Below are positions 22,801 through 56,214 of a DNA stretch of 64,000 nt, piece after piece. The number at the start of each line of letters is the position of its first letter. The first letter of the stretch is position 1. A model generated the notes under the pieces. The model worked only from the letters and a program-made list of their open reading frames with translations, did no database searches and was not told where the DNA came from. The translations under genes and the position numbers were made by a program. Location of the stretch: positions 37,265 through 101,264 of the forward strand of contig NW_021832718.1 in NCBI RefSeq assembly GCF_006345805.1. The letters are read 5' to 3'. Source of the stretch: Octopus sinensis (Eukaryota).

Positions 22801-25531
22801 ATTCGGCATAGAGGTGACTGTGTTGTTGAGAAGCATGTGGTCTTGGGTTCTGTTCCACTGTGCAGCACATGTGGTCAGAGCCTTCTACAAAAGTCCTAGA
22901 CTGATCAGAGCCATGTGAATAGATATCGTACACAGAAGCCCATCGCATGTGAATGTGTGAGCGTGTATATGCACGCATGCATGTGCCTTTTCCTTGACCT
23001 CAAATGATGATTGTAAACAAGCATCACTTTTATAAAAATGATGTTATTTGTTTCCAGCCATTTTTGATAAGCATGTCTGGCCATGGAAGAATATTATCTT
23101 GCTTGGAAACAAGTAAGAGTTGGTGACAGGATGGACATACAGCTATAGAAAAGCTGCTTCAGCTAATCCTGTCTGACTCATGCAAGCATAATAACAATGA
23201 TGTCAAAATGTTTAAATATATATGTGTGCGTGCATGTTTAGCAGTTTTTCATATCAGTGTATATACATGTTAGGAATCATAAAAACATTATTGTCCTGTC
23301 TAGAGATTAAACAAAAAACCAGCAACAGAACTCATAATTGCTACAAATGCTGGGTCTCACTAGCACTGATGATCTCTCACTCTCCTTACCATACTAAAGA
23401 CTATCGCAAAGACTGGCTTGCTTCCTCAGAGCCAGAGAAGTTTCTAACAATTACTAACCCTAATCAAAGTTCAAGTGTGACCTAAAATAAAATACTGTTA
23501 TATCTGAAATGGCAACAGTGATGCTAGAATAAATACAAACAACCTACTCTGTGTCCATTAGTACACCTAAGGAGTTGGTAAAATGTGTTGTTCTTTCTTT
23601 ATTTTATCTACAACCAGTACAGAGACCACTATTCTTTTGAAGTAGCTATTTTACCTGGAATTAACAAGAATTGTGAGAGATATGTTTAGTGGACAACATC
23701 CAAGATCCTCTAAAAATAGGTTGTAACTTTTTATAATATGCAGGCGTGGCTGTGTGGTAAGAAGTTTGCTTCCCAACCACATGGTTCTGGGTTCTGTCCA
23801 CTGTATGACACCTTGAGCTAGTGTCTTCTGCTATACCCTCAAGCCAACCAAAGCCTTGTGAGTGGATTTGGTAGACAAAAACTGAAAGAAGCCTATCCTG
23901 TATATATATGTGTCTTCATATCTGTGTTTGTCCTCCACCACAGCTTGACTACCGGTGTTGGTTGTTTACATCCCCATAACTTAGTGGTTTGGCAAAGGAA
24001 ACTGATAGAATAAGTATCAGGCTTAAAAAATAAGTACTGGGGTTGATTGATTCAACTAAAAAATTTTTCAAAGTGGTGTCCCAGCATGGTCACAGTCTCA
24101 GGACTTAAACAAGTAAAAGATAAGATGTAATTTATGTTTGGAAAGGAATATGATGGATACTTGAACTTTTACCCCATAAGCAGCAGAAATCATCAATTGA
24201 TATTTCAATAGAAAACAGCAGACATTATCAATTGATGTTTCAAAAGTTTTACATAGATACAACCATCATAAAAAAAAAGTGAATATTTTACAACACTTTT
24301 TAATGAGATTGAAAATGTTATTGTACAAGAGACTAACAATTATTATAGTTTTTGTGCTTATTTAAAGTGGGTATGTATAAAAATTACTCTTGAGATATTT
24401 TTTGCTTTTTGCCTAATTGGTACATACATTCATGCAACCCTTTCCCACTGTTTAAATGTTAATGGTTGCTTGACCTTCATGAAATAACAGCTGAATCTCT
24501 CTCATAGCTCACTTTACCATGTTAAAAAAGTGTATATTGAATAATGTAGGTTTAGTTGCAGTTCATCTCAGCCTTTCAGTCTCCTGTGATACATAGGACA
24601 TCCAAGTTCTCCTTTCTCATGCAGTCTTTCTAGTAACTCCCAGTTCTTTTCATCTTGTTTGTCTGTTGCTGAGATGATTCTTATTCCTGTTGGTTACTTA
24701 AGAAAATTTTACATTGTTAGATAGTTTTGAGTGCTATTACTTGTGTATAGATATCATCTTCATGTCCTGATGTCAGAGGGCACTTTAACTTCAGAAGAGC
24801 TTTAGCCAGAGGATGTCATCAATTTCTGAAGCAGGGAACTTTCTTTCCTCAAGATAAGTGAGTTTTTTTGCTTCCTATCTAATGTTTTTAGATGGCAGTC
24901 CTGTTAACCTTCTGTCCATCTACCAATCTAGAGGACCAGGTCTGTTATGCTCAAAGACATTGAGTAGATGCCTTTGCTTGTATCTCCTAGAGGAAGCCTC
25001 ACATCCCTACAAAGTTCCTTGATACACTGGTGCTGATTGAGTGTGGTGGGAGTCATAGATAAGGTACATTAGTTATGGGGTGATTTGGGGATAACAACAA
25101 TATAGACACTGAATATGGAGACTAGAGAGAAGTTGAATATAATCTGTTGGATGTATAATGTCTTCTATGAGAGACAGTATAAATGAGTTGAGAAAGTGTC
25201 AGGGCATTAAAGGTATTAATCAGTATATGAAGGAGAGATAACTATGCTAACTGAGAGGGACATGTAAATAATAGAAGATGAATGAAAAGTGTGTTGACAA
25301 AGTGAGAGGAAGTGAGGCAGATTTGTCTCTGGATATTATGCCACAAATATGAGATAACATTTGCTCATTTCCAATTTGGAAAAACTAATTTTAAAGCAAT
25401 ATTTATGATTACTGTGATTGAATTTAAAAAAAAATTTTTTCCATTTTTCTTAAAGTGAATTTTTTCTTTATTTTATATTTCTAGAACTAAAACAAGTTGA
25501 TACCATAATGGACAACCTGAATTCATCATAA
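19783..25531 (+). CDS. COMMD4: COMM domain-containing protein 4, last four exons: join(19783-19863, 21310-21371, 22613-22727, 25485-25531)
   Basis: Phase-consistent splice gives (E)HSIPLCKLYGDNVTKFQEQLRKQSLR-ISHMNSVQWRVDYVISSKSLK-TVNKPNVQICLKVVNPDTGNAKPVVFNMSAEKFRVFLN-ELKQVDTIMDNLNSS*. It matches COMMD4 motifs (WRVDY, SA.KF.V.L.ELKQ). First listed exon has an AT acceptor; 5' exons not found. Confidence 0.9.
20290..20680 (-). mobile_element. tRNA-derived SINE (octopus OK/OR-type)
   Basis: Reverse complement of the family at 23740, with tRNA-like head at the right end. Boundaries approximate. Confidence 0.75.
21310..21371 (+). CDS. COMMD4: COMMD4 exon (62 nt)
   Basis: tttag| ... aag|gtaagg; contains WRVDY. 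Confidence 0.9.
21700..22560 (-). mobile_element. Old degraded RTE LINE fragment (end of APE and linker)
   Basis: ICNT.FKKPASRLITY-like remnant with many stops; homologous to 18200-18600. Boundaries approximate. Confidence 0.6.
22613..22727 (+). CDS. COMMD4: COMMD4 exon (115 nt)
   Basis: ttttccag| ... aatg|gtaagt; MSAEKFRVFLN. Confidence 0.9.
22800..23180 (+). mobile_element. tRNA-derived SINE, diverged
   Basis: Head CATGTGGTCTTGGGTTCTGTTCCACTG and family body. Boundaries approximate. Confidence 0.6.
23740..24122 (+). mobile_element. tRNA-derived SINE (octopus OK/OR-type)
   Basis: A-box-like TGGCTGTGTGG, B-box-like GGTTCTGTCC, central microsatellite, AAAAGATAA tail. Confidence 0.8.
25485..25531 (+). 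CDS. COMMD4: COMMD4 terminal coding exon
   Basis: tttctag|aactaaaacaag; ELKQVDTIMDNLNSS*. Confidence 0.88.
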
Positions 25532-26472
25532 CAAATAATGTACAGCTGTCTTCTTGGCAAATGAATTCTCTGCAGAAACAGTTCAGACTTGGTGCTCTTA
25601 GGAAAACCCTGAATAGATACCACAAACTCTTTTCCTTTCCCCAATCTCAATAGGCTTAATTCAGAAATCATCTGATTCACAGTTGTATCTTTTTCCTGTC
25701 CTTAGGTAAGGCATGAATTTCACAACTTTTGTATGGTTAAGGCTGACCAATGATTACAGAATCTATTTGGCATATTTAGTAGAGATTATTGACAAGATGG
25801 TACACCAACTTTCTTCAGAGATACATGAACATCACAACCTCCTTACCTGCATTAAAATCAATTATTATTTATATTATCAAACATTGCACTATACATATAT
25901 TAATATTTAGGATACTACCTTTTTACATTCTGGATGAAGCCATTTTGTTTATGCTACCAAAGATTTTAGTAAAGGCATAAACATCATAAACCTATCACCA
26001 GCTGTGCATGATTGACCTTAGTCTTCAGTTTTATGCAGAAAGTACTTAACCTACTTTGCTAATATATCTAAATGTCACAACTTCCTGTCTCTCCATTCTA
26101 AATATGAACTCTGACTGACTTTTAATACTAGAGGGATGTGGATTCATGGCAAATAAAATACCTTGTGGTGTTTCAATACAACCTTTTAGATTCCAAGTTT
26201 AAATCCCTTGGTGTCAACTTTACCTTCCATCCTTTGGTGTGGTTAAGGAAAATAAAGTTTTTGGTAAGTATTATGGAGGCAGTATAATTAACTGTTTCCT
26301 CAATCTAAATGTCTGGCCTTGTGCCTATATTGGAAGCAATTATTAGAGGATGATGAATGGGAGAATCTTTAGTGTTGGACAAAATGCTTTGCTGCATTTA
26401 GTTAAAGCCGTTTAACGTTTTGCAATCAAATCCCTCTGAGATGAACTTTGCCTTTTGTCCTTTCGAGGGTTC

Positions 26473-27003
26473 ATCATTGTTTAACATCCACTTTCCATGC
26501 TAGCATGGGTTGGACGGTTTGACTGAGGGCTGGCGAACCAGATGGCTGCACCAGGCTCCAGTCTTGATCTGGCAGAGTTTCTACAGCTGGATGCCCTTCC
26601 TAATGCCAACCACTCCAAGAGTGTAGTGGGTGCTTTTACGTGTCAGGCAGTAATGGCAACGACCTCGCTCAAATCTTTTTACATATGTCACCGGCACAGG
26701 TGCCAGTAAGGCAATACTGGTAACGATCCTGCTCGAATGGTGCCTTTTACATGCCACCGGCACCGAAGCCAGTTAGCCACTCTGGCAGCGATCACGCTCG
26801 GATGGTGCTCTTAGCACCCTACTATCACGGGGCACAAGTGCCAGTAAGGCGACACTGGTAACGATCACACTCGAATGGTGCCTTTTATGTGCCACTGGCA
26901 CAGAAGCCAGTTAGCTGCTCTGTCAACGATCATGCTCATATGGTGCTCTTTGCACCCCGCTAGCACGGGTGCCTGTCATCGAATTTCACTTTGATTTTGA
27001 TTG
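26473..27003 (-). mobile_element. RTE LINE 3' UTR fragment with repeat array
   Basis: Same tail and 3' UTR as 15381-15900, including a duplicated ~130-bp block. Confidence 0.85.
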
Positions 27004-31160: not shown

Positions 31161-31956
31161 AAAAGTATATCTAAATAACATTTTTTTTCTTAATACTTTT
31201 TGTGTAGTGATTGAAGGAAGGTCTGGCTTTTGTTAGGTGTGGTCCCCATAACCATTCAGGATACAGAGGCTAGGAGTTTATTTCAATTCGGGAGTGAATT
31301 GTCATCACATGTCACTTAGTCGCAAACATGTCATGTAGCTGCAATAGAATGCTGCATCACCAACAATAATGTGATTTCTTTAAGACATCACCAAGTAATC
31401 TATCAAGTCCATTTATACATTTCTCAATACATACTGCTCTTGTGACCGCCCTCCCTCATTTTATGTCCCCATCATAGATGGGTAGATTTGCTAGTGTTGT
31501 AGTCTTGTCCAACCTATGTCTGTCTGAAAAATGGGATATAAAAATAATGATGATACACAGACATAAAAACTAATTTTGGTTAGAAAAGAGAAACAGACCC
31601 ACAGAAAGTATCAGAATAGCACATTGTTTGCCAGATGACTGGCTAATCACTTTTTCTTTGTAACTGGAGTCTTTATATTTTCTCTGCTATTTTATTGTAA
31701 ACATATTTCAATTATGCCACTTTTATCATAATTATTTGACGCACCAACAAGAAATAACCACATGAACTAAATTATGAATGCATATATCTTTTATTGTAGA
31801 AATACTACTATATATCTTTGTGAGAGGATGTTTGGAAAGTATTATTGTAAGATTATGCTTATCACTATATCTGTGCAAGAGAGAGAGACTGTGTTTGTGT
31901 GTGTGTGACTTTATGATTTATTTGTTGACATTCCAATTAACAACATGCAGGAAAAT

Positions 31957-32040
31957 CTACTCAGGTAGAGGAAGTTCTCCTCCTTTTTTGGCCAATTGTT
32001 CAGCAGCTTCGATTCCAGCACAACATTTATCCACATGGAC
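31957..32040 (-). CDS. RNASEH1-like: RNase H1-like terminal exon (84 nt incl. stop)
   Basis: ttcctag|gtccat; VHVDKCCAGIEAAEQLAKKGGELPLPE*. Confidence 0.85.
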   Translation of the reverse strand, partial: VHVDKCCAGIEAAEQLAKKGGELPLPE

Positions 32041-35000
32041 CTAGGAAATAGAAATAATATACAATCAAAATAATTTTTATATTTATTTGTTAATGTAAAG
32101 AGGAGGAGGCTATCCACAGCCTATCTATTTTTATTCTCCTATGCGGAGACTGAGAATAGAAATTAGAGAAACTCTCATTAAACTATAAAATTAAATAAAA
32201 TAATAATTTTAAAAATCTCTAAACATTATTAGTACCAATTTGAAACATGCATATTGTATTCCCAGGCCTACAATAATCATTTCCAAGTCCCTCCCTTCCC
32301 TGAATAACATCCCATTGGAATTCCCTTCCTGCCCTAGTTCTTTCTGTAGCAATCAACTTGAAGCAGCCAACTTAACCACTCTTAGAGGGCCTACATGGGC
32401 CATGAACACAATTCATTTCTATGAACCTTAATATTGATAATTCTTTCTAATTTTCGCACAAGGCCAACACTTTTCTTTCTTTTAATAATAATTCTAATTA
32501 CAATAAACCAGTCCCACTGGTTTGTTATTAAGTACTGACCATTCCTTGGTTAATCAAGTTACAAATTATACTAATATTTCTCTCAAAAGAGTTAAGTAGG
32601 TATCTTGCCTTTTCTGTTTCAAATTCATGTCTAAAATTTTAAGCATTGATTCATTCATAAAATAGTGTTTTTTTAAATTAAAAACAACCATTCAAATACA
32701 CTATTTTCTTTAAAACCCCTTTCTTCTAAGTGCTAGGCAATATATAATAACAACTGTTTATGACTATTTTCATTGGTTATTAAAGAAAAGTTTCTTGTTT
32801 CTTTGAATAATAGAAAGTTATTACTAACATTTTTAGACATGAAAAATTTTCTAGGCATCTACTCAAATTTTTGATGAGAGATTAAAATGACATTTAATTC
32901 TTCTAGAGTTCTTTGACAATCTGTCAATGAGACTAGTTCATCTGGAACCTTGTAATTCTTTGTGCTAGTTCATTCAGTAGTTGAAACAAACTTAAGAGAG
33001 TTAAGGATGTGTGTGGCAGGGGTGTACATATGCATACTTGCTTTTCTCCTCCCTCATTCAAATTTTATTCTTTTCTGTGCCAGCTATTTCTCATCTATTT
33101 CCAGTTCATCTGTTGTTCAGACTACATTCTATATTCCACCTTCACACACTGAAAAGTATTATTTGGTTGATAACCAGATGAGAAGAGGAGAGAGTGGAAG
33201 CAAAAAGACTTCCAGTTACTGTGGCTCTAAGTCTCCCTGCTAAGTTTCTTTATAACCACTACTTTTCTTCAAACCTCTCCAACATCAACAGTAGTTCAAC
33301 TACCAATTATTTTACACTGATGACATCTTGCCTCACCTTTCTTTGTACTTATTCTCATCACATTTCTTTCCTCTCTCACTCCTCCTACACCAATGCAGCT
33401 ACTGTTGAGGATGAGCAGTTTTCCATCCCTAAATTTTGCACTAATTTGTGTTGTCACCTGCCCAAATCCATAAAATTAAATATTAAAAAATTATTGATCT
33501 ATTTCTCACCTCAAAGCTTTTACTTCATTATCAGAGAAAAGGGAGGAGAGAGCATCTAAGTAGTAACAACTTGCTAGAAAAAGCCAAATTTCTCTTAAAT
33601 CACACCCTGCTGTCTTGGAATAGGACATACTTCAGAAAAGATGCATGGCCTTGGCTAGAATACCTTTGATCATAAGTCTGTTCAATTAGGGTTAAAACAA
33701 CAACATTTTTAGAGTTGCACCTCACAGAATGCTCCAACTTACAGCTAATCAAAGCACAACAACCCTTGCCAGTTCTCTGGTACCTCAACTCACTGGTTGA
33801 CACTACCAGTTCTACACTGATGACTCTTCACAACATATGTTTCACCTCTGACTCATCAGACAGTTAAATGTGGGACTGAAACCATTCTCCTAGATATGTC
33901 CTTCCACACTGCTCACACAACCAAACCTAACAGTCTGCAACATATGGAAGAAACCCCTCATACCATCATCAACTTCTACTATATCATCAAGATGATCAGT
34001 AGGAAAGGTAAAAAGCACACAGACTGAAAAATTTTTCTCCTCCAAAATTACAGTCAGATTTTCTAATCTCTTACCAAAATCTTTGCAAACCTTGATAAGT
34101 AATCTTAACCTCTTCTAATTAGACCACAATGGAAAAAAAAAACAAAGCACACAATCAAACATGTTTTCTCTCTCTCTCTCACACACACACAGAATAAAAT
34201 CCTTCAGTTGGTTTAGATGTCATGATAGAGTTTTCTTTTAGCTTCCCAGTTCGTCCTGCTTAAACTTACCCATTTAACATTGATTCCCTCCAATTTCTTA
34301 TCCAATTCCTGCAGTTCTTCTTTGTTTGTCACTTCTTCTCCACTTGATTTCATCCAGTTCTTCTTTTTCCAACCCTCCAACCATTTAGTTATACCTGGTG
34401 TGAGGGAGAGAAGGAACAGATTTAACATTATTGTCTTAGGCCTAACTTTTTGGTGTTACATTTAAAATCCCACCCAGCGTAACACTACCCTCTGGTCACT
34501 AATGGCCTCTAACTTATTCTGTTGCAAGTATTTGTGTTAATCTCTTGGTTCCTTTTAATTTAAATTTATTGCAAGCTCTGAAGTGTTGACGCTCAGGTTA
34601 AGGCCCCACTTCTCTCATGATTAAGATACACAAATACACAAAGTAATTATCATGGAAGTCAATAATGACAGCAAACACCAGAGAAACCACCATCATCATA
34701 ATTTAACATCCATTTTTCCATACTTGCATGGATCAGACTGAAATAGTTAAGGCAGATTTTCTACAGCCAGATGTATTTCCTATTGTCAACCCTCACTTTG
34801 TTTCTAATTTTACCTTGTGCTTATTCTTAGTGCAAGTTTTGAAGAGTACAGTGCAATTTTAACAGTTATTTTGTCAAAGCTGTTATGGAAATGACAAAGG
34901 AGCATATTCGGTATATTATGCTTTATAAGTTCAATAAAGGCAACAAAGCAACAGAAATTGCAAGGTATATTAATGCAGTATATGGGGTTCAGAAATAAGC

Positions 35001-38000
35001 ATAAGCCAGTATCAACAGTGGTTCCAGAAATTCCGAGCCAGAAACTACAGCCTAGAAGACGAGCCTCATTCTGGAAGATCTGTAGAGCCCAACAAGGACA
35101 TCCTGCAAACCCTGGTGGAACAAAATCCCATTGTAACTGTTGAGGAACTAGCAGAGAAACTTGGATTTGGTCATTCAACCATTCATCAACACCTGTGTGC
35201 CATTAGAAAAGTCAGCAAATTAGGTCAATGGGTCCCCCACAAACGTCCTGAGTCTAATTGCGCGCAGAGAGTGAATGGGTGTTCTTCTTTGCTGTTACAT
35301 CTCACAAATGAACTTTTTTGGACCAAGTAGTGACTGGTGACAAGAAATGGGTTCTCTATAAACATGTCAAGCACTGAAGACATTGGGTAGGAAAAGGAGA
35401 AACACTGGCACCACATAATGTGTTGTTATCTGTATGGTGGGATATGAAAGGTTTAGTCCACATTGAACTTTTAAACCCAAACCAAACAATAACAAAGGAG
35501 ATCTACTGCGAGCAGCTTGAGCAACTTAAGTCAGCACTAAAAGAAAAACAACTATTTTTGGTTTCAAGACGAAAGGTGTTCTTCCATCAGAATAATGCTC
35601 AGCCACATATAGCAAGGATGACATTCCAAAGGCTGGAGCAGTTTGAATGGGAAACCATATTCACCGGACATTGCCCCATCTGATTATCATTTATTCTGCA
35701 GTCTTCAAAATTATTTGGGCTAAAAAATAGGAATTTTGCAGATGAGGTCAGAACTGTACTGGAGGAGTATTTTTCGTCACAGACAAGTGAATTTTGGAAG
35801 AGGGGCAAGTGTACCAGATATATGGAAGAGCATTGTAGAAAATGAAGGAGAGTATATTTTAGACTGGAAAAGAATTTTGTTTATCTTAATTTTGAAAAAT
35901 GAAAGAAGTACAAAAAACCACATTATTTATGGCATGACCCAATAGTTCCAAGATATGTATGGTTAATAAAATAACACCTGTGACATGAGAGATGTGGGTG
36001 TGGCTATCATCATTATCATCATCATTTAATGTCTGTTTACCATGCTGGCATGGGTTAGACGGTTTGACTGGAAGTGGTAAGCTGGAGAGCTGCACCAGAT
36101 TCCAGTCTGATTTGGCATGGTTTTTACAGGTGGATGCCCTTTCTAATACCAACCACTCCGAAAGTGTAATGGGTGCTTTTTTATGTGCCACTGGCATGGG
36201 CACCTTTTACATGACACCAGTAACAGCCATGACTACGATTTCACAGGTGCCATTTACATGACACTAGCAAAGGTCATGACTATGGTGTCACTTGGTTCAA
36301 TGAGTCTCCCCATGCACAGCTATACAAACAGAAATAACAATATTATGATGAATGAGAAGTAGATAAACAAACTGAAAAATAAAAACAAAAGTATTCCACA
36401 TAAATATTACCTGTAACAGATTTACTTGTACAAATATTCTGTGAAGAGCAAAGATAAGTGTAGCTCCAGCTGCTATTTGCTACAATGAAGCTGACCAATA
36501 AACATATAAACATCTGCCAATTTGTTCCTGGAAGACTACATGTAAAAAGCCCTGCTGCTAAAGGTGAATATTGTAAAAGAGGTATTCTGGAAATACCTAA
36601 TCCCCAGGCCAATGAGGGAGGCTCTATAATTACTTAACATGCTAGAAATAGCAATCTGATCTCCCTCAAATCACTCCCTACCATCTTAAAAATGGATAGA
36701 CACATTGGATAAATGTAGTTCTAGATACATTTAAGAAATAAAAAAATAAAAAAACGGGATAGTCTGCTTTGTTCAATCAGCATCGATCTAAAATAACATG
36801 CACAATTTTCTGCTTCAACCTTAACATATAGTAATTTTGCAATAGGATGCAGTCACACACAACACTAAGAGATCCTCTGGACATTCACTGATGGAAGTAA
36901 AATACTTGGGTTCCAAATGAAAGAAGTTAGGGAATAACATCCACAAACACTAAATAGGTTAAGGATTAGTTGATTCATAGGAGAAACAAACATAACTTAC
37001 TCTGTATTAGGTTCAGATTATTAGTTTTGATAATAAGGTTTGAAATCTTTTTGGCCTTTGCTTGTTCAACAGCTCTAATGGCAGCCTGCAAACAAAATAA
37101 TTTCATTTTAGAAAAAGACTAAACAAAAACAAAAAAACATCTCTAGATGCTTAAATATAAAGGTTGAAGTTACAATAGCAAGAAGGGGGAAGAGTTTTTG
37201 TGCCTTCAGATGAAGTCACCCCCACTCCACACACAAGGTGTCAATTAATGAGGAGCTTCCCAACAAATAATTCTCTCAGTATTTTCACTTGAAAACTTAA
37301 ATAGAATAGCTTACATATAATACAGCGCGATTGTTTGTTTGTTTGCCACCAAGTCTTTCACTTGTGTTCCTGTAAAAACAGAGCATGCTAGACTTAGTAA
37401 TTCTGCTGACTAATAAAAATTACACTGCTTTTCATCATATGAAGCAATAAACCAATATACATCTTCAAATACAATCATATACATACACAAAGCAACATAC
37501 ACCATCATATATACTCACCTACAGACATACACACAATCCGACATATATCATCATACACACACACACACTATACACCATCGTGCACATTCAAAGTAAAAAA
37601 ATTGTGATAAGTAGATAGCTGGTAAGTAGATAGACAGACAGACTGATCTTTTAGAAGAAGTAGCTTATTGCAATATTGGAAGGAAAAAAATAAGAATCTC
37701 CATTCTTTCAGTCTGTCAAGTCTTTCATTCCCTATACAATGATACACTACACACATACACATTCTTATGAATATAACTGTATTCATTGTGTAACTCTTTC
37801 TCAGTATGTGTGAATGTATGTACACAGATAAACACAAATTTCTCTATGTGATTGTTAGAAACATTTAGTTAAATAAAGCTAATGCTTTTGAAAATAAAAC
37901 ATTTCATGCTTTCTATCGTCATATCTCCAATTGACTAAATATCTTTAATGATTTTGTTGATAAATGAGTTTCTGTATAAACATACATATGTATACAGACA

Positions 38001-38028
38001 GATAGATAATATTGTGTCATATTCATAC

Positions 38029-38063
<35 letters not shown>

Positions 38064-41000
38064 CCTGTATGAATGTGTATACACATGTCATTATACAGAG
38101 AAAGACAAACAGAGAGAGAGAGGGGGAAAGAAAGAGATATGTGAACAGAATAGCGATTCATATTTTTATGTTAAAAATAGTGCTGAGAAATATATGTGTG
38201 TCTGTACATACATGGACTCTCAATGAAACACCTGCACAGATGATGCTTATAGAGATCAAAAGTTTGTACTGCACATTAGGTCACTCCCTCCATCAAATTG
38301 ACACTGTTTGTACAGATGGATGATGTGTCATACATCAGATGTCAAAGTGATTGCAGAGCAACGTGAGACAAAATGTTTTACTCAAGAACAGCAGCCCAGT
38401 CCAGGAAATGATCTCACATTCACAAGTTCAACACTAACTACTAGGCCCCCCCCCCAATCTGTGTTCATACAAATATACATGCAGAGAGGGGTGAGTAAAG
38501 CGAACTGGAAGACAGGTTTCACAAAAATGATACGACTGATACACATTTACAGACATACAAATATATACATTTACACACACTATATACACACATTCATACA
38601 CAAAAAGAGTATATACAATGTTCACACCCTGAAACGCCTATCAATATACAAACCAACATTTTAACAAACTTCAATACATAAAGTAAAGACTTACCAGTTA
38701 ATTTGTGATGGAGAGTATGAGGGGTGAGGGATATTTATTATGACAAAGATATACATGAATCAAAGGAGTAAATTAGGTGCCATTATCTTAATATGACCAC
38801 CATACTGCAACTCAGTCCAGGCAATGTTGTTCCTGACACTGACAAAATCTTCAACTGAGCAAACAAAGGAATCTATATGTGATGGATGGACCACACATTA
38901 CCTGAGGGGGAAATTTGAAACCAGCCACTGATGTAACCTAAAAAAAACCCATATAAAACTAAGTTCAACCCTTAAGTCCAAAAGAGTAATTTAACGTGAC
39001 GTAACTATAAATTTGTAAAATCGGAGACTCCTTATTTTCCTCAACACAGATGTACCCCAACAGATGCTTTTTCACTTGCAATTCCTCCTTGATGCCAAAG
39101 AAATTATTCCCCCTCATCCTTGTTGTTTCTACCCACTCAATCTCATAGGAAAATCTGCTAAGTTTCTTCCCATCATATCACAGCCTTACTGTTTTACATA
39201 AAAGATAAACTATATAAAGTAGTCCTAAATATACAAAAGACAGATAGGTTATGGCTTATAGAAACATTACTAAGCGATATATTGAAACAATTCAAATCTA
39301 TAAAGGCACAATAATCCTTCTGTTCCCAAAGAATAAATAGAAATGGGGGACCACATTCTATATTTCTAGCTCTATCCCCATCCATCCCATGTTGTTATGT
39401 GACTAATTAGTCAAGCGCTAACAAGAAACAAAACAACAACAAAAAACTTACATTTCTCTGTCTCCCCAGTAGACACCAAATCCAGCTGAGGCATCAGGTT
39501 TACCATTGTTGAGACAGCTGCCATAAATGAAAACAACTCCATAATCATGAGCCAATTTTTTCTCTGTAAAGAAAAATTTGCATAAATTATATATAAAAAT
39601 ATATTGCAGCTTGGCTCTTTATAGAAATTATAAAAAATATATTGTTGCCTGGCTCTTTATATAAATCATCTATGAACTGGCTAGAAATTATGGAGAGTGT
39701 AATCTCTAGGGAGAATATTTGGGTGAGACAAATGAGTGAATGTAATTGTTAAGCTGTTTCTTTTTTATCAATTTTACTGTGAGGAAGGGCTCTACGAATA
39801 TCTGACAAATCTTCCAAAACCAATGAGATCAATGTGGTTTATGTTTATATACAACTCCAGGAAAAGAAGAGTAGCAAGTAGATTTCAAAAGACTGATGTC
39901 CTGGTGAAGTAGGCTTGGGCATAGTAGTTAGACAGAATATGGCAGAGGAGAGTAAGATAGAGATGAGAGAAGTTAGCTTGAGACCAGCCAGCTCCAAAGA
40001 GCAGAAACCACAGTATCAGTGGTAGAAAATGCAGAGTGAGGGAATAGCATGTTTGTGACCCAGAGGCTGAGAAGTGTTGGTGAGAGACTATACCAATGAT
40101 TTTAATTTTGGTACAAGGCCAACATTTTTGAGGGGAGCAGGTTAGTCAAAACCATTGACCTTAAACTTACTTGATTGGTGAGTTCAAGGTCAACTCTGAA
40201 AGGATGAAAGACAAAGTTGGCATTGGCAGAATTTGAACTCAGGACATAAAGAGCCAGAGCAAACACTTGTGAGAAATTTTCTTGATGCTCTACTGATTTT
40301 ACCAATCCCCAATAATAATAATTGTTTCTAATATAGGCACAAAACCTGAAGTTTGCAGGAAGAGATCAGTCAATTAAATCAATCCTTGTAACTGACAAGT
40401 ACATTATTTTATTAACCATGGAGAGGTGAATGGCAAAGTAGATCTTGGTAGGGATTGCAATAATAATGATGATGATGATGATGATGAGTATGGATTCAAA
40501 GACACAGAAACTATTGACACTGATGAGTATGAATATGAAGTCATGGAAGCTATTGACAGATCATGGAACAATTTATTCCAAGAGTGATACTTATAGAAGA
40601 AAGGGTGGGAGGGAATTGATCAGTTGTTGGGATTGTGTTGAAGCAGAGAAAAGCAGCTTAGGATGATATGTAAAAAATGCCACCGAACCATTGCTGATAC
40701 ATGTGAAGAAGTCCAAAATCATCAAAATTGATAATTGTGTTAAGAAAGAGAAATCTAAAGAAGAAAAGAACACAAAAAAAAAAGTACAGTCAGTTTGCAA
40801 GAGATATGAGCTCCAAGACAGACACAGAAGCACTTATATGCACAGCACAAGAACAAGCATTGAGGACAAACTATTTAAAGTGCAAAATTGATAACACAAC
40901 TAAGAGTGACAAATGCCAAATGAATGGTGAGAGGAGTGAAACAGTGTGCATTGTTAGTGAATAACCAAAATCAGCACACTGTAAATACAAAGACGACAAG

Positions 41001-43594
41001 ACAATGAGGCAAGAATGATCCATTGGAGATTTGTGGAAATTATGGCCTAGAAAGATCAGACATGGTATGACCAAATTTCAGAGGGAATTACTGCGAATGA
41101 AGATTGCAAAACCCTGTGAAATACAATGATTCAGTGTGATCATCAGATTAGACAATGGAAACCTAACATTGTTGTGGTGAACAGAAAATAAAATAAAATA
41201 TGCCTGATAATTGACAAGCATGTCTGGTGATAACAGGATCGAAGAGAAAGAAAAAGAAAAAGTGAACAACTATGATGAATTGAAGTGGGAAATACACAGG
41301 TTATGGGCAATGGAGAGAGTGGACATGATACAAATAGTGATTGGTGCAGGTGGAAGAATCAGCAGTTATCAAATACCAATACAGCTCAAGAAGATTGGTA
41401 CAAATGTAAAAATAGAACACCTGTAAAAATCAGCATTGCTTGGAACTGCAAGAGTTCTCCACAGAGTTCTTGAACCATGATCAGTAAACAAGTGTCACTT
41501 TAGCCTGCTGGCTAGGAGAAGCTGACACTTTTTATCATACCAAGCAAAATAAGCTGCAAGTTTTCATTAACAAAAAACAATAATAAAATATTAACAATCT
41601 CTTAAAAGGAGAATGAAAACATGATACATTACCAGTAAAACCTCCTTCTTCTTCAACACACTTCTTCTTTTCAGGAGGTTCTGATGCGTCTTCAGATGAA
41701 TCAGAAGCCTTCCTCTTAGTAGTTCCTGTCAAAAGCTTAGAATCAATTGCCAGTTTAACACTTGTTGTCAACTTAGCCAAATCATTTTCAACATTACATG
41801 CTAATGTTGAAAATTCTTTGCTTTCTTCTGAGTCATCCAAATCAGCCAGCATTGACACCAGTGTCTGACAGAGAGGAGAGACTTCTTTCACTCTGGACAT
41901 GAGTTTTTTCACAATCGGTTGAATAGATTTTGCTACACTGGAGAGAGTTTTGTCTGTTAATATATAAATAAAATAGCAAATTAGTTACATAATATTAACA
42001 AAAAAACACTAATTACTTGGGAGAGCAAAAATGGGAAAAGACTATTAAATATATATCCACTGAGAGACAGAGAGAGTGTGTGTGTATTTAAGAAATTTGT
42101 TAGTCATCCACATGGTTTCTGGTTCAGTGACACTGGGTGGTACCTAGACCAAATATCTTCTGTTATAGTCCTGAGCCAATGAAATCTTTATGAGTGAATT
42201 TGTAAGATGGAAACTAAAAGAAGTTCCTTGTGTGTGTGATGTGATGATTGTAAATGAACATCTCCATCATTAAAACAATGCTATTTATCTCTAATCTCCT
42301 GTGAAAAACATGTCTGGCTATGAGGGAAAATATTACCTTGCTTAAGGGTTGGCAATAACAAGGGCATCAAGATGATGGGATGACTGGAATAGGTATCTGC
42401 TAGTCTTCTTCAAAAATCTTGTCCAAACATACACACGAGAGCAGATATGTGGTTAACCTTGACTAATGGTGGCCCAATATAGTACTTAACTGGAACTTTG
42501 TTTTTATTGGCCCTCAACAAATGAAAGACAAAGTTTATCATAGTGGGATTTAAACTCACAATAGAAAGAGATGGAACAAAACCTGCACAGCATTTTGTCT
42601 GACACTACTAATCCTGCCACAACAGCAATCTTTCATCTTTATTTGTTTCAGCTTTTGGATTGCAGCCATGCACTGCCTTGAACGATTTAGTTGAACAAAG
42701 TGAGCCAGTACTAATTTTTTAAAAGTCTGGTACTTACTACATCAGTTTCTTTTGTCAAACTACAAAGTTATGGGCACATAAACAAACTAACTCTGGTTGT
42801 CAAGCAGAAACACAAGACAGACACACTTTGTGTGATGGGCTTCAGTTTCATCATCATCATCGTTTAACGTCCGTTCTCCATGCTAGCATGGGTTTGATGG
42901 TTCAACCGGGGATCTAGGAAGCCAGAAGGCTGCACCAGGCTCCAGTCTGATCTGGCAATGTTTCTACAGCTGGATGTCCTTCCTAATGCTAACCACTCCG
43001 TGAGTGTAGTGGGTGCTTTTTACGTGCCACCAGCACAGGTGCCAGGTGAGGCTGACAACAGCCACAATTGGATTGGTGCTTTTTACATGCCACCGGCACG
43101 GAATCCAGTCAAGGCGGCGCTGGCATCGGCCACGTTCTGTTTACCAAATTCACTCACAAGGTATTGGTCAGCCTGGACTATAGTATAAGACACTTGCCCA
43201 AAATGCAAGCATAGTAGGACTGAACCTGAAATCATATGATTGCAAAGCAAGCTTCTTCACAACACAACCAAACCTGCACAATAATTATTTTTTGATACAG
43301 ACACAAAGTCACAATGAGAGAACAGCTGACTATATCAATCTCAGTACTGGACCATTATTGAGCCCCAGAAGGATGAAAGTTAATTGACCTAACTAGGATT
43401 TGAACTCAGAACGTAAAAAACTGAGCTAAATACCACAAGATATTCATTCAACACTCTACTGATTATACCAAACAGCACTAAAATTCTATTCACCTGATGC
43501 CGGAATTTCTGCAAAAGCCAGAGCTTCCTCTTCTGTACTGAACTTCTTAAACTTGGCGCCATAGAAACCATTTATCTGTTCTTGACATTCAGTC
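31957..43594 (-). CDS. RNASEH1-like: RNase H1-like protein with degenerate active site: join(43494-43594, 41633-41953, 39452-39563, 37315-37369, 37001-37085, 34270-34394, 31957-32040); first exon not located
   Basis: Seven AG/GT exons with compatible phases and no stop: HBD (TECQEQINGFYGAKFKKFSTEEEALAF), long connector, then VVFIYGSCLNNG..AGFGVYWG / ERLGGKQTNNRAVLY / AAIRAVEQAK..LIIKTNN / ITKWLEGWKKKNW...VTNKEEL..LD / VHVDKCCAGIEAAEQLAKKG. AATAAA at about 31917-31922. Confidence 0.9.
34270..34394 (-). CDS. RNASEH1-like: RNase H1-like exon (125 nt)
   Basis: caccag| ... tgg|gtaagt; ITKWLEGWKKKNW substrate-binding region. Confidence 0.92.
34810..35943 (+). mobile_element. Mariner-family transposon, decayed, in an RNase H1-like intron
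   Basis: EHIRYIMLY, WVPH, VTGD.KW, LSVWWD and FHQNNAQPH motifs; 3' TIR ATTATTTATGGCATGACCCAATA. 5' TIR not seen. Confidence 0.85.
37001..37085 (-). CDS. RNASEH1-like: RNase H1-like exon (85 nt)
   Basis: tttgcag| ... |gtaagt; IKTNN where RNase H1 has TDS. Confidence 0.9.
37315..37369 (-). CDS. RNASEH1-like: RNase H1-like exon (55 nt)
   Basis: tttttacag| ... |gtaagc; QTNNRAVL where RNase H1 has QTN.RAE. Confidence 0.9.
39452..39563 (-). CDS. RNASEH1-like: RNase H1-like exon: catalytic domain start (112 nt)
   Basis: tttacag| ... |gtaagt; FIYGSC where RNase H1 has YTDG.C. Confidence 0.9.
40480..41480 (+). mobile_element. R4/Dong-like LINE 3' fragment (zinc knuckle and restriction-like endonuclease), decayed
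   Basis: ETV.I.S..., IHW, KPNIVVV, EKEKEKV.NY.ELKWEI..LW and IVIGA motifs, next to an (ATG)n run. Boundaries approximate. Confidence 0.7.
41633..41953 (-). CDS. RNASEH1-like: RNase H1-like exon: connection domain (321 nt)
   Basis: taacag| ... actg|gtaatg; open frame with KRKAS and PPEKKK basic patches. Confidence 0.85.
42110..42420 (+). mobile_element. tRNA-derived SINE, diverged
   Basis: Family head and body. Boundaries approximate. Confidence 0.6.
42630..43270 (-). mobile_element. tRNA-derived SINE interrupted by an RTE 3' tail (about 42847-43135)
   Basis: SINE halves join across the CATCATCATCATCGTTTAACG... insertion. Confidence 0.75.
43494..43594 (-). CDS. RNASEH1-like: RNase H1-like exon: hybrid-binding domain (101 nt)
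   Basis: tttttcag|g ... tcag|gtgaat; FKKF motif. Confidence 0.88.
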
Positions 43595-47045: not shown

Positions 47046-48022
47046 CAGGGGTTGGACAAAATAATGGAAACACCTAGCATCATAATTTTGAAATATCTAT
47101 AAAACCGTCTAAAGCTTGTTTATTTTTGTGTTTTGATTTATTATTAGTGTTGCTTAATGTTTTGCTAAAATTGCTGTTTCTTTTCAGATATCATCATAAA
47201 AAGGTAATTAAAATTCATTAAAAATGACAGATCTATCGGACTTTCAAAGAGGTCAAATTGTTGGTGCTCATATGGCAGGCACTAGCATAATGAAAACAGA
47301 CGAAATGTTTGGTGTATCAAGAAGTACTATCACAAAAGTAATGACAGCCTTTGAGAAAGAGGGAAAAACCTCCTTGTCAAAACAAAACTCTGGAAGAAAA
47401 TCAAAACTTTCAGATGGGGACCATCAGACACTTATGCGAATTGTTAGAGAGGATCACAACAGTACAGCTCCCAAAATTACTGCAGAGCTTAATGACTACC
47501 TTGAGAACCCAGTTTCCACAAAAACTGTTCGCCAGGAGCTGCATGGGAGGGCTGCAATCAGAAAACTACTACTTTCAAAAACAAACATTGCAAAGCATTT
47601 AGAGTGGAGTAAAAACCTACAGAATTGGTCCCTAGAGCAGTAGAAGAATGTTATTTTCTTTCAGTATGATAATGCACCAATTCACACAGCTAAAATTGTT
47701 ACTGAATGGCATGAGGAAAATTTTAGTGAAGTTGAACATCTCTGGCTACCACAGTCCCCAGAGCTCAATATTATTGAACATTTATGGTGAATTTTAAGAA
47801 AACAAGTAAGGAGTTGATATCGTTCACCATCATCACTACAAGAACTGGAGACTGATTTAGCTAAAGAATAGACAAAAATTTCTTTGCAAACAAATCAAAA
47901 TTTGTATGAGTCCATACCTCATAGAATTCAAGCTGTAAATACTGCCAAAAGCGGTCCTACCCCATATTAAAATAAATTTGTTAGAAATTTTAAGATGTTT
48001 CCATTATTTTGTCCAACCCCTG
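47046..48022 (+). mobile_element. Tc1-like transposon, internally deleted (977 bp)
   Basis: TIRs CAGGGGTTGGACAAAATAATGGAAAC at both ends with TA TSD; HTH ORF 47224-47643; jump from W.NVIF to FQYDNAPIH; later SPELNIIEHLW. Confidence 0.93.
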
Positions 48023-49424
48023 TATATAAGTATCTATATTCTTACATATAGCAATAGCAACACTATATACTTTTCTCCTTATTTTACAACTCTGTCTTGG
48101 TACTCTACCACTGTTCCGAGACATATTTTAATTTTGAATTGTATCTTATTTCAATTCACCCTATTTCATTACCAGCTGTATGTTTATTCAAAACTAAATA
48201 TTTTATAAATATCCCAACCAAATTTTGGTTTCTTCCTTAATTTTAGGTTTCTACTCTAACTCTTTAAGGCACACCCTACCCCTTACTAACTTCTTCCCTC
48301 TTTTTCTCCTTTTCTGTTATGTCTCTGCATGTCACATTCTAAGGTCAGCAGAATACTTCTGCTAGCTTACTTTCCACCCTTCTGTTTTTTTTGTGAAAGG
48401 AATGAGTTCCTTTGTTCAGGTGCTCCATTTGCTATAAAAATCTGCTGAATGGAGGGCTGGGCATGCTGTGGTTACTGATGTACAAACATGTGCTGAAGTT
48501 ATGACATCTCCAGTGCTTCCTTGATGGTGAGTAGGTGTGGTCATAGTTTTTCAGATGGGATTTTCCAGTTTGTCTCTTTGACTGAGCTGCAGTCTTGAAT
48601 CAAGCATAGACATAGAGTGTTGTCAGGTGCTCACAGTCCTCTGTCAATCAGGAAAAGCAGTCAGTGGAAGATCTACTCCGGCCTTCTATAGAGGGTTAGT
48701 GGCAGGCAAGTACAATGATGTTCTCGGGGAGATTCTGGGCGTTGGTGAGAATCAACTGGTCGGTCTGTTTCAAGTTTTTGGGCCAGGGCCTACGGATAAT
48801 TTCCAGAAATCCTTGACTTCGCAGTACTACCAGGGGGTAACTGGCAGGACTTCCAAGCGAAAGGAAGGAAGGTGGCAGGATTGTCTTTCTTTGCTCGGTA
48901 GCCTTAGCAAATGAGGTTATGTGGTGAACCATATTGAAAGGGCTGAAGACAGACACTTTCCTCTTTGGCCAAGCCTTCAACTTCTTAAGCTTAACTTGAA
49001 ATGGAAAGTGAGGGTGGAAAGGGAAGTGCTGCTTCCCCATAATTTTACTAAAAGGTGGGTGAATGTTGCAAGAATGGTCCAAGTGAATGGTCCAACTAAG
49101 CATGCACCTGTTAGTTGAAGGAGGACAATGTAAAGAGAGCACTTGTCCTAGTGGTCAGCACAATCCTGGTTTTTGTGGGATCTCCACAAGCAGCCCTAAG
49201 AAGTCTCCTTCTTTTGGGGAATTATTCATTGTTATAATTTACATTGAGATTGTTTTATTTTTTACATGCCTTTTATCTAACCCCACATTGTATTGTCCTG
49301 TACTGTCCCCAATGTTTTTGTGAACCCTTAGTGGTTAATGAACATTATCATTATTCATATTATTGTTATTGCCATTATTTATAATACTAGTATTACTGTC
49401 TTTATTATTATTAATAGTGGTATT

Positions 49425-49443
49425 ATTATTATTATTATTATTA

Positions 49444-49478
<35 letters not shown>
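49425..49478. repeat. (TTA)n microsatellite
   Basis: Seen directly. Confidence 0.9.
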
Positions 49479-49479
<1 letters not shown>

Positions 49480-49486
49480 CGTTGTT

Positions 49487-49945
49487 AAGGCAGAGAGCTA
49501 GCAGAATCATTAGCATGCCAGGCAAAATGCTTAGTGGTATCTCTTCCTGCCTTACAGTCTGAGTTCAAATTCCGCCCCGGTCGACTCTGTCTTCCATCCT
49601 ATTGGGGTTGATAAAATAAGTACCAGTCACACACTGGGGTCAATGTAATCAACTAGACCCCTACCCAAAATTTCAGGCCTTGTAGAAAGGATTATTATCA
49701 TTGCTATTGTCATTATTTATAATACTAGTATTATTGTCTTTATTATTAATAGTATCATTATTATTATCAAGGCAGTGAGCTGGCAGAATCGTTAGCATGC
49801 CAGGCAAAATGCTTTGTGTCTTTACATTCTGAGTTCAAATTCCATCAAGGTTGACTTTGCCTTTCATCCTTTCGAGGTCAATAAATTAAGTACCAGTGAA
49901 ACATTGGGATCAATATAATCAACTAGTCCATTCCCCCATAATTTA
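49487..49945 (+). mobile_element. Two tandem copies of a second tRNA-derived SINE family
   Basis: GGCAG.GAGCT.GCAGAATC.TTAGC...GAGTTCAAATTCC heads at about 49487 and 49780. Confidence 0.8.
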
Positions 49946-50499
49946 GTAGTAAGGATTATCCTTTTCCTATTATTAGTATTGCTATTGTTTTTAATTTCAT
50001 CCTTCTTTCCCTTTTAGCCTTTTTAATTTTGTCGCTTGTACTAAACTGAAATGATATTTCACCCATCAATTGTAATTTGATACTGGCGTCTGTCGGTTTA
50101 CTTGTAATTGTAAACACTAACTCACTTCTACCATTCAACTATTTGTTTAGCTTTCTCTTTCTTCTGCTTCTACCAATTCTCCATCTTTAACTTCTTAATG
50201 TTCTTGTCCTCTTTCGTCATCATTTTTTTCTTTCATCTCCTAACCATGCTTTTATTTACTTTTTGTTTCTTCCTGATATAAGCAAAATGCAAAGTCTGGC
50301 AGACACACCATGTAAAAGTGCACATTTGATAAAGGTCTGAGAAAGTGCTACTCTAATGTCTAAGATCACAAATATTACATAAATTTTCACTTTGAACTTT
50401 TGCATAAACTGGCATTCAAAGCAGAGTTGGTACAGAAAAGAGTTGGTACTGATCATTAAAGATGTGTCAAAGTCTTTCTTTCTCTTATTTGGATTATAT

Positions 50500-51800
50500 A
50501 TCATTATCATTTAACATCCATTTGTCCATGCCAATGTGTTGGACAGCTCAACAGGAGCTGGCAAGCCAGAGGACTACACAAAGCCTCACTGTCTGTTTTG
50601 GCATGGTTTTGTAACAGGATCTGGTATCGGTATCACTGAAAGGGTGTCGATCCGATCCTGTCACATACAATTTAGTAAGATATAACAGACGAAGTCAGGT
50701 TATCGGTGAAAGACAGCAGTTTGTTTATTAATTGCGATGGTGTACGTATATCTGATGGGAAAACGACAGCCGAATCTGTTGTACAGCTTCTTGTTCGTTG
50801 GTTGAAGTGGTTCGATGTCGTCCGCGGCTAAGTCGGTGTAATTATTAGAGTCTACGAATGCACGTCTGTTCACGAGGGCTGACGGCCAGAGAGAATGAAT
50901 CGAGTTTAGCGGGCCTTAGGGATCATTTCCCGCACATGCGCATGGGGAAGACTTCCGGTGGCCACCCGGAAGTAGTCCCATTCTGCGCATGCGCGCTGAA
51001 CCCTACACAGTAGCATCACTACAGTTTTTACAGCTGGATGCCTTTCCTTGCCAATCACTTTATAACGTGAACTGAATGCTTTTCACATGGCACCAGCACT
51101 GGTAAGGTCTACTTTGCATATGGCTTTTACAGCAGGATGCTCTTCCTAATGCCAACCACTTTACAATGTGGACAGAATGCTTTTTATGTGGCACCAACAC
51201 CAGTGAGGTTACCAAGTAACTTGCAAGACAAAAGTCCTCTGAGAGGTGGGATGGTATTGAAGGATGTCCCTTTGTGCCTGGTGATGAGGGATTAGAGTAT
51301 AAAAGAGGGTCAGAAGCAGGTGTCTTGCTGTAGAAGAGATATATGGTTACCATTGTTGGAGAGAGAGAGATAGAGAGAGTAATTGAGAATGAGGGAAAAC
51401 AAGAGTGGAAGAGAACGAGATTGAGAGAGATGGTGGTGATATGCCAGGAGATACTCTTAAGGTATAGAGATGAGAATACAAATTGGATGGTAGAGCATTG
51501 CTAAGGGTGCATGAGTAGAGAATTCATGAGAATGCAAAGCGGGGAGGGTGGAATGCAGCATCTAGTGAAACCTTGGTTATACAGAGTGGTTGGGTGGAGG
51601 GAAACAGGATCACAATGATACAGTGGGTGGGGCAGTGAGGACAGAACTGGGCTGCAGGAGTGAGGAAGAGGCGAAGGGGAGATGTAGTTTCGTTTATTAG
51701 GGTAAGGTGTGTGAAAAGCTTTTTAATGTTACATATGGGTGTAACACAGTACTTCTAGAATTCAGTTTTGCTGAGGTGGGTGGGTCTTCTCAAGAACCTC
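50500..51800 (-). mobile_element. RTE-related 3' fragment hosting the solo LTR
   Basis: CATTATCATTTAACATCC tail; GGCATGGTTT|TTACAGCTGGATGCC is split by the LTR. Boundaries approximate. Confidence 0.65.
50610..51023 (-). mobile_element. Solo LTR related to the Gypsy LTRs at 2111 and 7020
   Basis: TGTAACA...ACTACA, 414 bp, flanked by the 4-bp TSD GTTT (50606-50609 and 51024-51027); colinear with but clearly diverged from the paired LTRs. Confidence 0.93.
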
Positions 51801-52098
51801 ATAAAACCAGACATCTCAGTCTGTGAAGCCTAACATCTTGTAATCAGTCCTCACTACTTCATCCCATGTCTTCTTCCATATTTGCCATCAACTTTAAATG
51901 ATTGACACTTCTTTATCTCTATTACACTTTATTGTACATGCACATTTATGTTACATGTGCATTACAACATACTAGCTTCATTACTCTCGAGTTTATGCAT
52001 GTCTTCTGCATTTAGAGTCCCTGTCCCACTACAATGAAGTACAACCGTTCATACACAAGCATCATACAATCTGCTTTACATTACACACACACATACAT

Positions 52099-52131
<33 letters not shown>

Positions 52132-52933: not shown

Positions 52934-52940
<7 letters not shown>

Positions 52941-52997
<57 letters not shown>
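52941..52997. repeat. (TA)n microsatellite
   Basis: Seen directly. Confidence 0.95.
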
Positions 52998-53000
<3 letters not shown>

Positions 53001-56132: not shown

Positions 56133-56214
56133 TAGAACAAATATCCCAAAGGAGTGAGGTGGGAGCAATGTATATATCCCTCCCCAATATACATTGGCAA
56201 AAGCTCTACATATA

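Follow-up and report, generated by a model that had tools for sequence, protein, structure and literature searches.

The 64,000-nt stretch of Octopus sinensis DNA analysed here (the window; coordinates are positions in it unless another locus is named) forms the last 64 kb of the unplaced scaffold VCDQ01002559.1 (101,264 bp). Its minus strand carries, from 43594 to 31957, a ribonuclease H1 (RNase H1) gene, hereafter the window copy, which comprises exons 2–8 of one unit in a young RNASEH1 tandem array. All five active-site residues of the enzyme are replaced in this copy, the reading frame is open throughout, and the amino acids encoded by the catalytic exons changed about ten times faster than intron or silent positions. 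That the gene is a selected, non-catalytic derivative of RNase H1 which binds RNA:DNA hybrids, possibly within a genetic conflict, is the reading favoured here, and we give it about even credence. The lone paralog described by the first-pass annotation is replaced by one member of a lineage-specific array, in which exon variants have been shuffled between copies.

Gene model and active site of the window copy

The gene model consists of seven exons on the minus strand, each with an AG acceptor and a GT donor and with compatible phases, and the frame stays open for 293 codons up to the first stop (TAG, 31959–31957); the earlier description of seven canonical exons in phase, free of stops and frameshifts, holds in full. 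The features are listed below, with residues numbered as in human RNase H1.

43494–43594 (-): exon 2, second half of the hybrid-binding domain (HBD), TECQEQINGFYGAKFKKFSTEEEALAFAEIPAS; AG/GT borders; FKKF at 43540–43551; PF01693 at E=5.6e-10
41633–41953 (-): linker exon, 107 codons; AG/GT borders; 100% match to P0004/P0015
39452–39563 (-): catalytic exon 1, EKKLAHDYGVVFIYGSC...GVYWGDREM; D145 to Tyr (TAT, 39525–39523); T144 to Ile
37315–37369 (-): catalytic exon 2, NTSERLGGKQTNNRAVLY; E186 to Val (GTA, 37323–37321); T181 and N182 kept; R179 is Lys
37001–37085 (-): catalytic exon 3, AAIRAVEQAKAKKISNLIIKTNNLNLIQ; D210 to Asn (AAT, 37022–37020); S211 to Asn
34270–34394 (-): catalytic exon 4, ITKWLEGWKKKNW...INVKW, basic protrusion; three Trp and N240 kept
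31957–32040 (-): last coding exon, VHVDKCCAGIEAAEQLAKKGGELPLPE followed by the stop; H264 to Cys (TGT, 32025–32023); D274 to Glu (GAA, 32001–31999)
31917–31922 (-): AATAAA hexamer resembling a polyadenylation signal, starting 35 nt past the stop; from sequence only, with no test against chance
43595–64000 (-): 3' part of intron 1, continuing to the scaffold end

The other motifs lie, on the same strand, at 39514–39531 (FIYGSC), 39463–39477 (GVYWG), 37318–37338 (TNNR/NRAVL), 37017–37028 (KTNN), 34354–34383 (WLEGWKKKNW) and 31990–32007 (AAEQLA). The protein encoded by exon 2 is 100% identical to the counterpart exon in O. sinensis isoforms X1 and X2, and the first base of this exon is a lone G completing a codon whose other two bases come from the upstream exon 1. 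Catalytic exon 4 is almost identical to that of the canonical O. bimaculoides gene; the His loop is shortened by a two-codon deletion in the last coding exon.

The product matches the Pfam families RNase_H (PF00075, E=5.6e-21) and RNase H1 N-terminal HBD (PF01693, profile positions 17–44 of 44), and a sequence search of the PDB returned human RNase H1 2QK9 at E=7e-36. The 2QK9 alignment places Y, V, N, C and E of the window copy at D145, E186, D210, H264 and D274, which agrees with the dismantled Y/V/N/E active site reported earlier and adds the replacement of H264 by Cys. With all five residues of the catalytic set (D145/E186/D210/D274 and H264) replaced, the window protein is, by homology and locus, a member of the RNase H1 family, and, as judged from its residues, a derivative outside the functional enzyme class. 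An Rfam scan of the window gave zero matches.

The gene is already listed in RefSeq as XP_036355104.1, "ribonuclease H1-like [Octopus sinensis]" (242 aa), a protein that corresponds to the window exons from an internal Met (MSRVKEV...) of the linker exon onward; its locus on VCDQ01002559.1 (L004) is 100% identical to window 21957–51900. Close matches in the protein search were only O. sinensis and O. vulgaris proteins named "ribonuclease H1" or "ribonuclease H1-like". A literature search found no publication on octopus or cephalopod RNase H1 pseudoenzymes, inactive paralogs or the window-gene accessions; the earlier remark that no description in cephalopods was known is therefore borne out for the literature, but not for the RefSeq annotation.

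The tandem array at the RNASEH1 locus

The window copy descends from the RNASEH1 locus, as indicated by exon structure and synteny: its exon borders agree with those of O. bimaculoides RNASEH1, and the flanks on the unplaced window scaffold are 98.7–99.5% identical to the chromosomal array. In O. bimaculoides, a single canonical 39-kb gene (L005) adjoins RPS7. Between RPS7 and a COMM-domain gene, the O. vulgaris chromosome OX597827.1 carries three units, i.e. A, B (L001) and C (L006), and the O. sinensis chromosome CM016872.1 carries a 134-kb RNase H1 gene model with two exon-1 start points, of which the downstream unit is termed L007 here. Two more units stand in tandem on the unplaced O. sinensis scaffold VCDQ01002521.1 (L002 and L003). 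The unplaced scaffolds represent either extra units or a second haplotype; in both cases there are several distinct degenerate units in two independently assembled species.

The RNase H1 of Argonauta hians, for which one gene was returned, is canonical, as are several transcript-derived cephalopod proteins and the O. bimaculoides gene. The array is confined to O. vulgaris and O. sinensis rather than being a feature of cephalopods generally, which narrows the cephalopod-wide scope suggested at first. From the genomes sampled, with coverage reaching 10 kb past the O. bimaculoides gene on its downstream side, we infer that the array arose after the split from O. bimaculoides.

The first unit of the array retains D-E-D, and the downstream units are without two to five of the five active-site residues, in varying combinations. 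The states in unit A and in the six degenerate units that were compared are as follows.

Unit A (proteins only): D145 region FTDGCC; E186 region NNRAEIY; D210 region KTDSQ (in O. sinensis); last exon not covered
Window unit: D145 to Y; E186 to V; D210 to N; H264 to C, D274 to E
L002: D145 to A; E186 to V; D210 to N; H264 to C, D274 to E
L003: D145 to A; E186 to V; D210 to S; H264 to C, D274 kept
L007: D145 to Y; E186 kept; D210 to S; H264 to C, D274 to E
O. vulgaris B: D145 to A; E186 kept; D210 to S; H264 kept, D274 kept
O. vulgaris C: D145 to A; E186 kept; D210 to S; H264 to C, D274 to N

The FTDGCC, NNRAEIY and KTDSQ motifs of O. sinensis isoform X1 represent at least part of a canonical copy in the same species, which supports the proposed status of the window gene as a paralog. 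D145 and E186 are present in 93 of 93 other RNase H1 homologs. Every catalytic exon occurs as two or three types that are combined differently among the units, pointing to recombination or gene conversion between them; for example, the D210S-type exon shows no difference over 85 nt between L003 and L001.

Exon 1 of the window copy was sought upstream, as the first-pass annotation had proposed, but pattern searches in all six frames gave no credible candidate in the window, because the scaffold ends at position 64000. The second half of the HBD is present and canonical in the window copy, and the first half is encoded by exon 1, past the scaffold end. Since window 47657–64000 aligns at 99% to intron 1 of the chromosomal copy L007, the missing exon is probably of the altered type found in that copy. 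In L003 (300–10100) and L007 (3600–16000), exon 1 sits in a 1.94-kb unit that is tandemly repeated six to seven times; the ATG that starts the mitochondrial isoform reads AAG in all of these repeat units, and the exon-1 peptide is MSDYPVKKGREPGVHET(W/R), compared with MPFYAVKKGRVPGVYETW in the canonical form. Depending on the unit, this exon ends in TG (Trp) or CG (Arg) before the gt donor; the Trp that had been predicted at the exon junction is thus plausible for the window copy, not certain. Exon 1 of O. vulgaris B is canonical, with the upstream ATG included.

It is conceivable, though in our view improbable, that the units serve as alternative exon cassettes of one complex transcription unit that yields chimeric isoforms, some active and some dead. 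The longest annotated isoforms in both species join copy A, from exon 1 to catalytic exon 2 or 3, with downstream 3' exons: O. sinensis X1 (P0017) extends over 134 kb; O. vulgaris X2 (P0023) extends over 113 kb, and past catalytic exon 2 its exons are those of a downstream copy. Neither O. sinensis nor O. vulgaris has an annotated RNase H1 product that is canonical throughout, and this also poses an annotation question in its own right. However, in each unit examined (L001, L003 and L007) the exon series is complete and begins with a separate exon 1, the window copy has its own stop codon and AATAAA hexamer, and the near-identical introns and exons make spliced alignments across copies error-prone. 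A 99-aa gene model, moreover, lies exactly at the expected site of the last two exons of copy A, at a 36.6-kb offset as in O. bimaculoides. A search for these terminal exons with the C-terminal 70 residues of the O. bimaculoides protein gave one candidate, a genomic read-through open reading frame (ORF), which was uninformative.

The sequence beyond the gene in the window gives some indication of the arrangement of the array. Over positions 1–3744 the window matches the DNA immediately upstream of the L007 exon-1 region at 99.5% identity, which makes a further unit after the window copy probable; the larger region of window 1–7.7 kb was rejected as proof of a next unit, as its match upstream of exon 1 of other units is partly a repeated long terminal repeat (LTR) element. 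Window 21919–26812 is 98–99% identical to DNA downstream of the terminal units L006 and L007, where the COMM-domain gene is annotated on the opposite strand, and the duplication unit seems to include the 3' flank of that gene; none of the ten ORFs of at least 50 aa in this region gave a COMM-domain match.

Both terminal units, L007 (61551–81494) and L006 (12473–41300), contain an insertion of 18–27 kb at an identical site within the intron that separates catalytic exon 1 from catalytic exon 2, corresponding to window 38061/37602; for this reason the two units look orthologous, though the types of their first catalytic-domain exon differ. The O. bimaculoides gene (L005) contains, at 37206–37274, a partial second copy of catalytic exon 1 (VVFTDGCCFHNGKHGASAGLGVF) about 190 nt downstream of the real exon.

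Two kinds of retroelement were observed in the window. An LTR retrotransposon at 2111–7451 (-), with 432-nt LTRs at 2111–2542 and 7020–7451, contains long ORFs for an integrase, a reverse transcriptase with RNase H, and a DUF7041 gag-like protein, and a second, partial reverse transcriptase/RNase H copy lies beside it at 185–1668; the family is young, as copies at other loci are 94–99% identical. A long interspersed nuclear element (LINE) at 16730–19179 (-) contains Exo_endo_phos endonuclease and reverse-transcriptase ORFs, and copies with about 93% identity are found in intron 1 of other array units.

Substitution pattern and selection

Intron and exon divergence was determined from a four-way alignment of the 12-kb gene body. 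Between O. sinensis units, the introns differ by 0.54–0.79% and the five catalytic exons by 3.9–7.4% (Fisher P 2e-8 to 6e-20), and the excess ends at the exon borders: catalytic exon 1 shows 11 differences in 112 nt, compared with 1–2 in 599 nt of its 300-nt flanks (window against L002, 11/112 and 1/599), and catalytic exon 3 of the window copy differs from that of L003 at 13 of 85 positions, compared with 5 of 600 in the flanks. One of the assemblies was built from error-prone long reads, but the O. vulgaris assembly, made independently, shows the same types of exon.

The ratio of nonsynonymous to synonymous substitution rates (dN/dS) for the catalytic domain is 2.5–13 between degenerate units (Nei-Gojobori, pairwise), i.e. 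well above the value near 1 that the first-pass annotation had named as the sign of a young pseudogene. The window copy differs from L003 in this domain by 33 nonsynonymous and no synonymous changes, and from O. vulgaris B by 56 and two, respectively. Because the pairs are not independent, events among the six degenerate units were also counted on per-codon minimum spanning trees, which gave 83.5 nonsynonymous and 4.5 synonymous events (pN/pS, the corresponding ratio of proportions, 4.7; binomial P=3e-5). These figures point to positive, diversifying selection on the catalytic exons, concentrated around the active site.

The frame and the splice sites also appear to be maintained by selection. 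Among the about 84 amino-acid-changing events, about seven nonsense changes were expected and none was observed (P ~1e-3). Of six exon length changes, five are in frame (linker +3, -18 and -3; catalytic exon 1 -3; last exon -6) and the sixth is a 1-nt loss in L007, compared with 21 multiples of three among 66 short indels over the whole gene alignment, most of which is intron. The sister copies are mostly intact, so the disabled orthologs that would have pointed to a pseudogene are not the rule.

The changes in the window copy are not spread evenly over the conserved positions: all five catalytic positions are changed, compared with three of the 32 other columns conserved to at least 90% in RNase H1 (P=1.3e-4). 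These three (T144I, S211N, and an Asn five residues before D274) all adjoin catalytic residues. Conserved glycines and alanines are kept, together with the three tryptophans of the basic protrusion, N240, T181 and N182; among the remaining columns, 27 of 115 are changed.

Two other sources of exon-specific change were considered and rejected. Hard-wired RNA editing is not the cause, because the substitution spectrum of the window copy (10 A>G, 10 T>A, 10 G>A and 10 C>T) lacks an A>G bias; gene conversion with a divergent donor, be it cDNA-mediated or ordinary, is not compatible with silent sites that are nearly identical in the affected exons.

The pattern also bears on the proposal that the copies are young functionless duplicates, i.e. 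pseudogenes in the making, in which the catalytic losses represent decay and the intact frames represent youth. Silent and intron divergence among the copies is 0.5–2.5%, which left little time for stops to accumulate; signs of decay are present in the lost mitochondrial start, the faulty exon-1 repeats, the acceptor loss in O. vulgaris C and the tail frameshift in L007; dN/dS for the HBD and linker is about 1.1–1.9, on small counts; and the protein searches returned no transcript-derived protein of any O. sinensis or O. vulgaris copy. Neutral decay, however, predicts that exons diverge about as much as introns, whereas the catalytic exons are six to ten times more diverged, with sharp borders; it predicts a dN/dS near 1 and several stops, contrary to the counts given above, and does not predict that conserved core columns are spared or that exon indels are in frame. 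We therefore regard functionless duplicates as unlikely.

The earlier proposal of a retained pseudo-nuclease stands insofar as the gene is intact, spliced and catalytically dismantled; the selection acting on it appears to be diversifying, and not simple retention. From their sequences, the array copies probably perform a new, non-cutting role.

Fold, hybrid binding and putative role

An AlphaFold2 model based on 71 aligned homologs gives the catalytic domain a predicted local distance difference test score (pLDDT) of 91–98. The best PDB matches of this model in Foldseek are human RNase H1-hybrid complexes (target-normalised TM-score 0.90–0.94, root-mean-square deviation 1.1–2.6 Å, with 40–42% identity to the human catalytic domain), and several of the top-matching human crystal structures are the D210N mutant according to their PDB titles (e.g. 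2QK9). Like canonical metazoan RNase H1 (human 2QK9/2QKK/6VRD), the gene has the domain order HBD, linker and type-1 RNase H domain; it shares the exon structure of O. bimaculoides RNASEH1, and the array adjoins RPS7. What sets the window copy apart from the canonical enzyme are its five replaced residues, the shortened His loop, its membership of a multi-copy array and the rapid evolution of its amino acids.

The linker exon (model residues 35–109) is predicted as two long helices (pLDDT ~82), unlike the human RNase H1 linker, which is usually described as disordered; the predicted cephalopod linker might mediate self-association.

Substrate contacts are largely kept, as had been noted at first: W221, W225, W231, N240, T181 and N182 are retained in the window copy, in addition to the second half of the HBD with its FKKF motif (human K59/K60), which is kept in all but one copy of the array. 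For the first strand of the HBD, which is altered in the O. sinensis sister copies, the expectation is uncertain. The phosphate-pocket residues, reported as R179, T181 and N240 in the 2007 human RNase H1 structure paper, are mostly unchanged in the degenerate copies, and the DNA-strand contacts (all three Trp, N240 and the counterpart of human S233) are unchanged in six of six. The basic protrusion of the human enzyme stacks its W221 against a deoxyribose, and it is the phosphate-binding pocket that discriminates in favour of the DNA strand (PMC8960830). The changes cluster in segments that line the groove, i.e. strand 1, the beginning of helix A, the strand with D210 and the helix after it, and the His loop.

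This distribution could also reflect detoxification: a dead copy would act as a dominant-negative competitor of the active enzyme, and selection would then have weakened hybrid binding, leaving a product that is inert or binds another ligand. The clustering of changes along the groove, the alteration of T181 and N182 in one copy (L002), and a dN/dS above 1 that would need no external antagonist are in line with this. We nevertheless give it little credence, since the DNA-strand contacts, most of the phosphate pocket and the second HBD half persist as described, and since the copies diverge from each other instead of converging on an inert state.

Catalytically dead D210N RNase H1 has been engineered as the standard R-loop probe (R-ChIP). 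The window copy carries the identical replacement of Asp210 by Asn; unlike the engineered protein, it is also without D145, E186, H264 and D274 and has changed neighbours of these residues. In experiments with the human protein, D210N RNase H1 binds hybrids without cutting them, binding is lost with W43A/K59A/K60A, and W43A/K59A/K60A/D210N serves as the non-binding control (PMC6868509).

For the favoured reading, i.e. a selected, non-catalytic hybrid binder, the following mechanism may be proposed. Without D145, E186 and D210 the two metal ions cannot be held, as established by mutagenesis, and RNA is therefore not cut; the pseudo-nuclease would dock on RNA:DNA hybrids via the HBD and via the basic protrusion and phosphate pocket, and would occupy them without cleavage. 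Alternatively, it may bind a derived ligand instead of the hybrid. If exon 1 of the window copy resembles that of the O. sinensis sister copies, in which the mitochondrial start is lost, the protein would act outside mitochondria. A generic R-loop reader would not need diversifying selection, which makes a conflict or a changed ligand more likely; a conflict-type role might, speculatively, consist in blocking, or competing for, the access of RNase H to replication intermediates of retroelements or viruses. The LTR element and the LINE in the window itself are noted beside this idea.

Several observations weigh against this reading. Exon 1 of the window copy, with the start codon and the first half of the HBD, is absent from the assembly, and in the O. 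sinensis sister copies the first HBD strand is altered at four positions (F>D, A>P, V>E and Y>H; FYAV to DYPV), several exon-1 repeat units are frameshifted or contain stops, and some have W>R; the HBD function of the window copy is uncertain, given these alterations. O. vulgaris C is without the linker acceptor, and its FKKF reads YKNF. In L007 (86838–86920), an A-run of the last exon has five instead of six A, and the resulting 1-nt frameshift replaces the last eight codons by a tail of 23 residues in the RefSeq isoforms; the missing A may be genuine or may stem from a homopolymer error of the assembly. With Tyr in place of D145, the substrate groove may be obstructed. The dN/dS values are based on a small number of synonymous sites (S ~92), the pairs compared are not independent, and the sequences recombine; the intact frames alone mean little because the copies are so young (silent divergence <2.5%). 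The missing transcript-derived proteins, mentioned above for O. sinensis and O. vulgaris, count here as well, and the ligand may no longer be a hybrid, as generic hybrid binding does not predict diversifying selection.

Going further, the array might constitute a fast-evolving host restriction module, in which dead RNase H1 proteins occupy RNA:DNA replication intermediates of retroelements or viruses or serve as decoys for factors of these, and in which active RNase H1 is possibly produced only from chimeric transcripts between units; we consider this doubtful. If true, a housekeeping nuclease would have given rise to a type of restriction factor that had not been recognised before.

Catalytic loss in RNase H1 duplicates is not unique to octopus, yet it appears to be undescribed in the literature searched. 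Among 1.84 billion representative proteins that were scanned, 139 more relatives turned up, most of them with the full D-E-D-H-D set. Broken sets in proteins of the "RNase H1-like" type (P0109, P0194, P0207, P0208, P0216 and P0240) comprise those of the moths Pararge aegeria (XP_039765861.1, D145A) and Pectinophora gossypiella (XP_049887164.1, D145N and D274N), the tardigrade Paramacrobiotus (XP_055329058.1, E186L), the ostracod Notodromas (CAG0922122.1, D145G and D210E in the second domain), and a three-domain metagenomic ORF (P0109) whose second and third domains are degenerate (D145V and D210S). In contrast to the octopus units, these are single proteins or multi-domain fusions that lost one or two residues, and we know of no other RNase H1 case with a comparable array and selection signal.

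Exons that diverge faster than introns are known from snake-venom phospholipase A2 isozymes and conotoxins, and APOBEC3 and TRIM5 are tandemly amplified antiviral factors. The octopus array resembles such families in being tandemly duplicated, with introns that barely differ, highly divergent exons and a dN/dS above 1; the proteins and their biology are unrelated, and the analogy is one of evolutionary mode only.

The roughly tenfold excess of exon over intron divergence, with 84 replacement and about five silent events, is a signature usual for toxins and immune genes. In a housekeeping nuclease it would not be expected, and it suggests that a conflict over RNA:DNA hybrids has gone unrecognised in a retroelement-rich genome. 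The broken-site RNase H1-like proteins of moths, a tardigrade and an ostracod suggest that catalytic loss may be a recurrent, overlooked theme in this family. A natural, tandem-amplified and positively selected dead RNase H1 would show that evolution makes use of non-cutting hybrid binding, or of a function derived from it, and the array would supply ready-made protein variants for its study.

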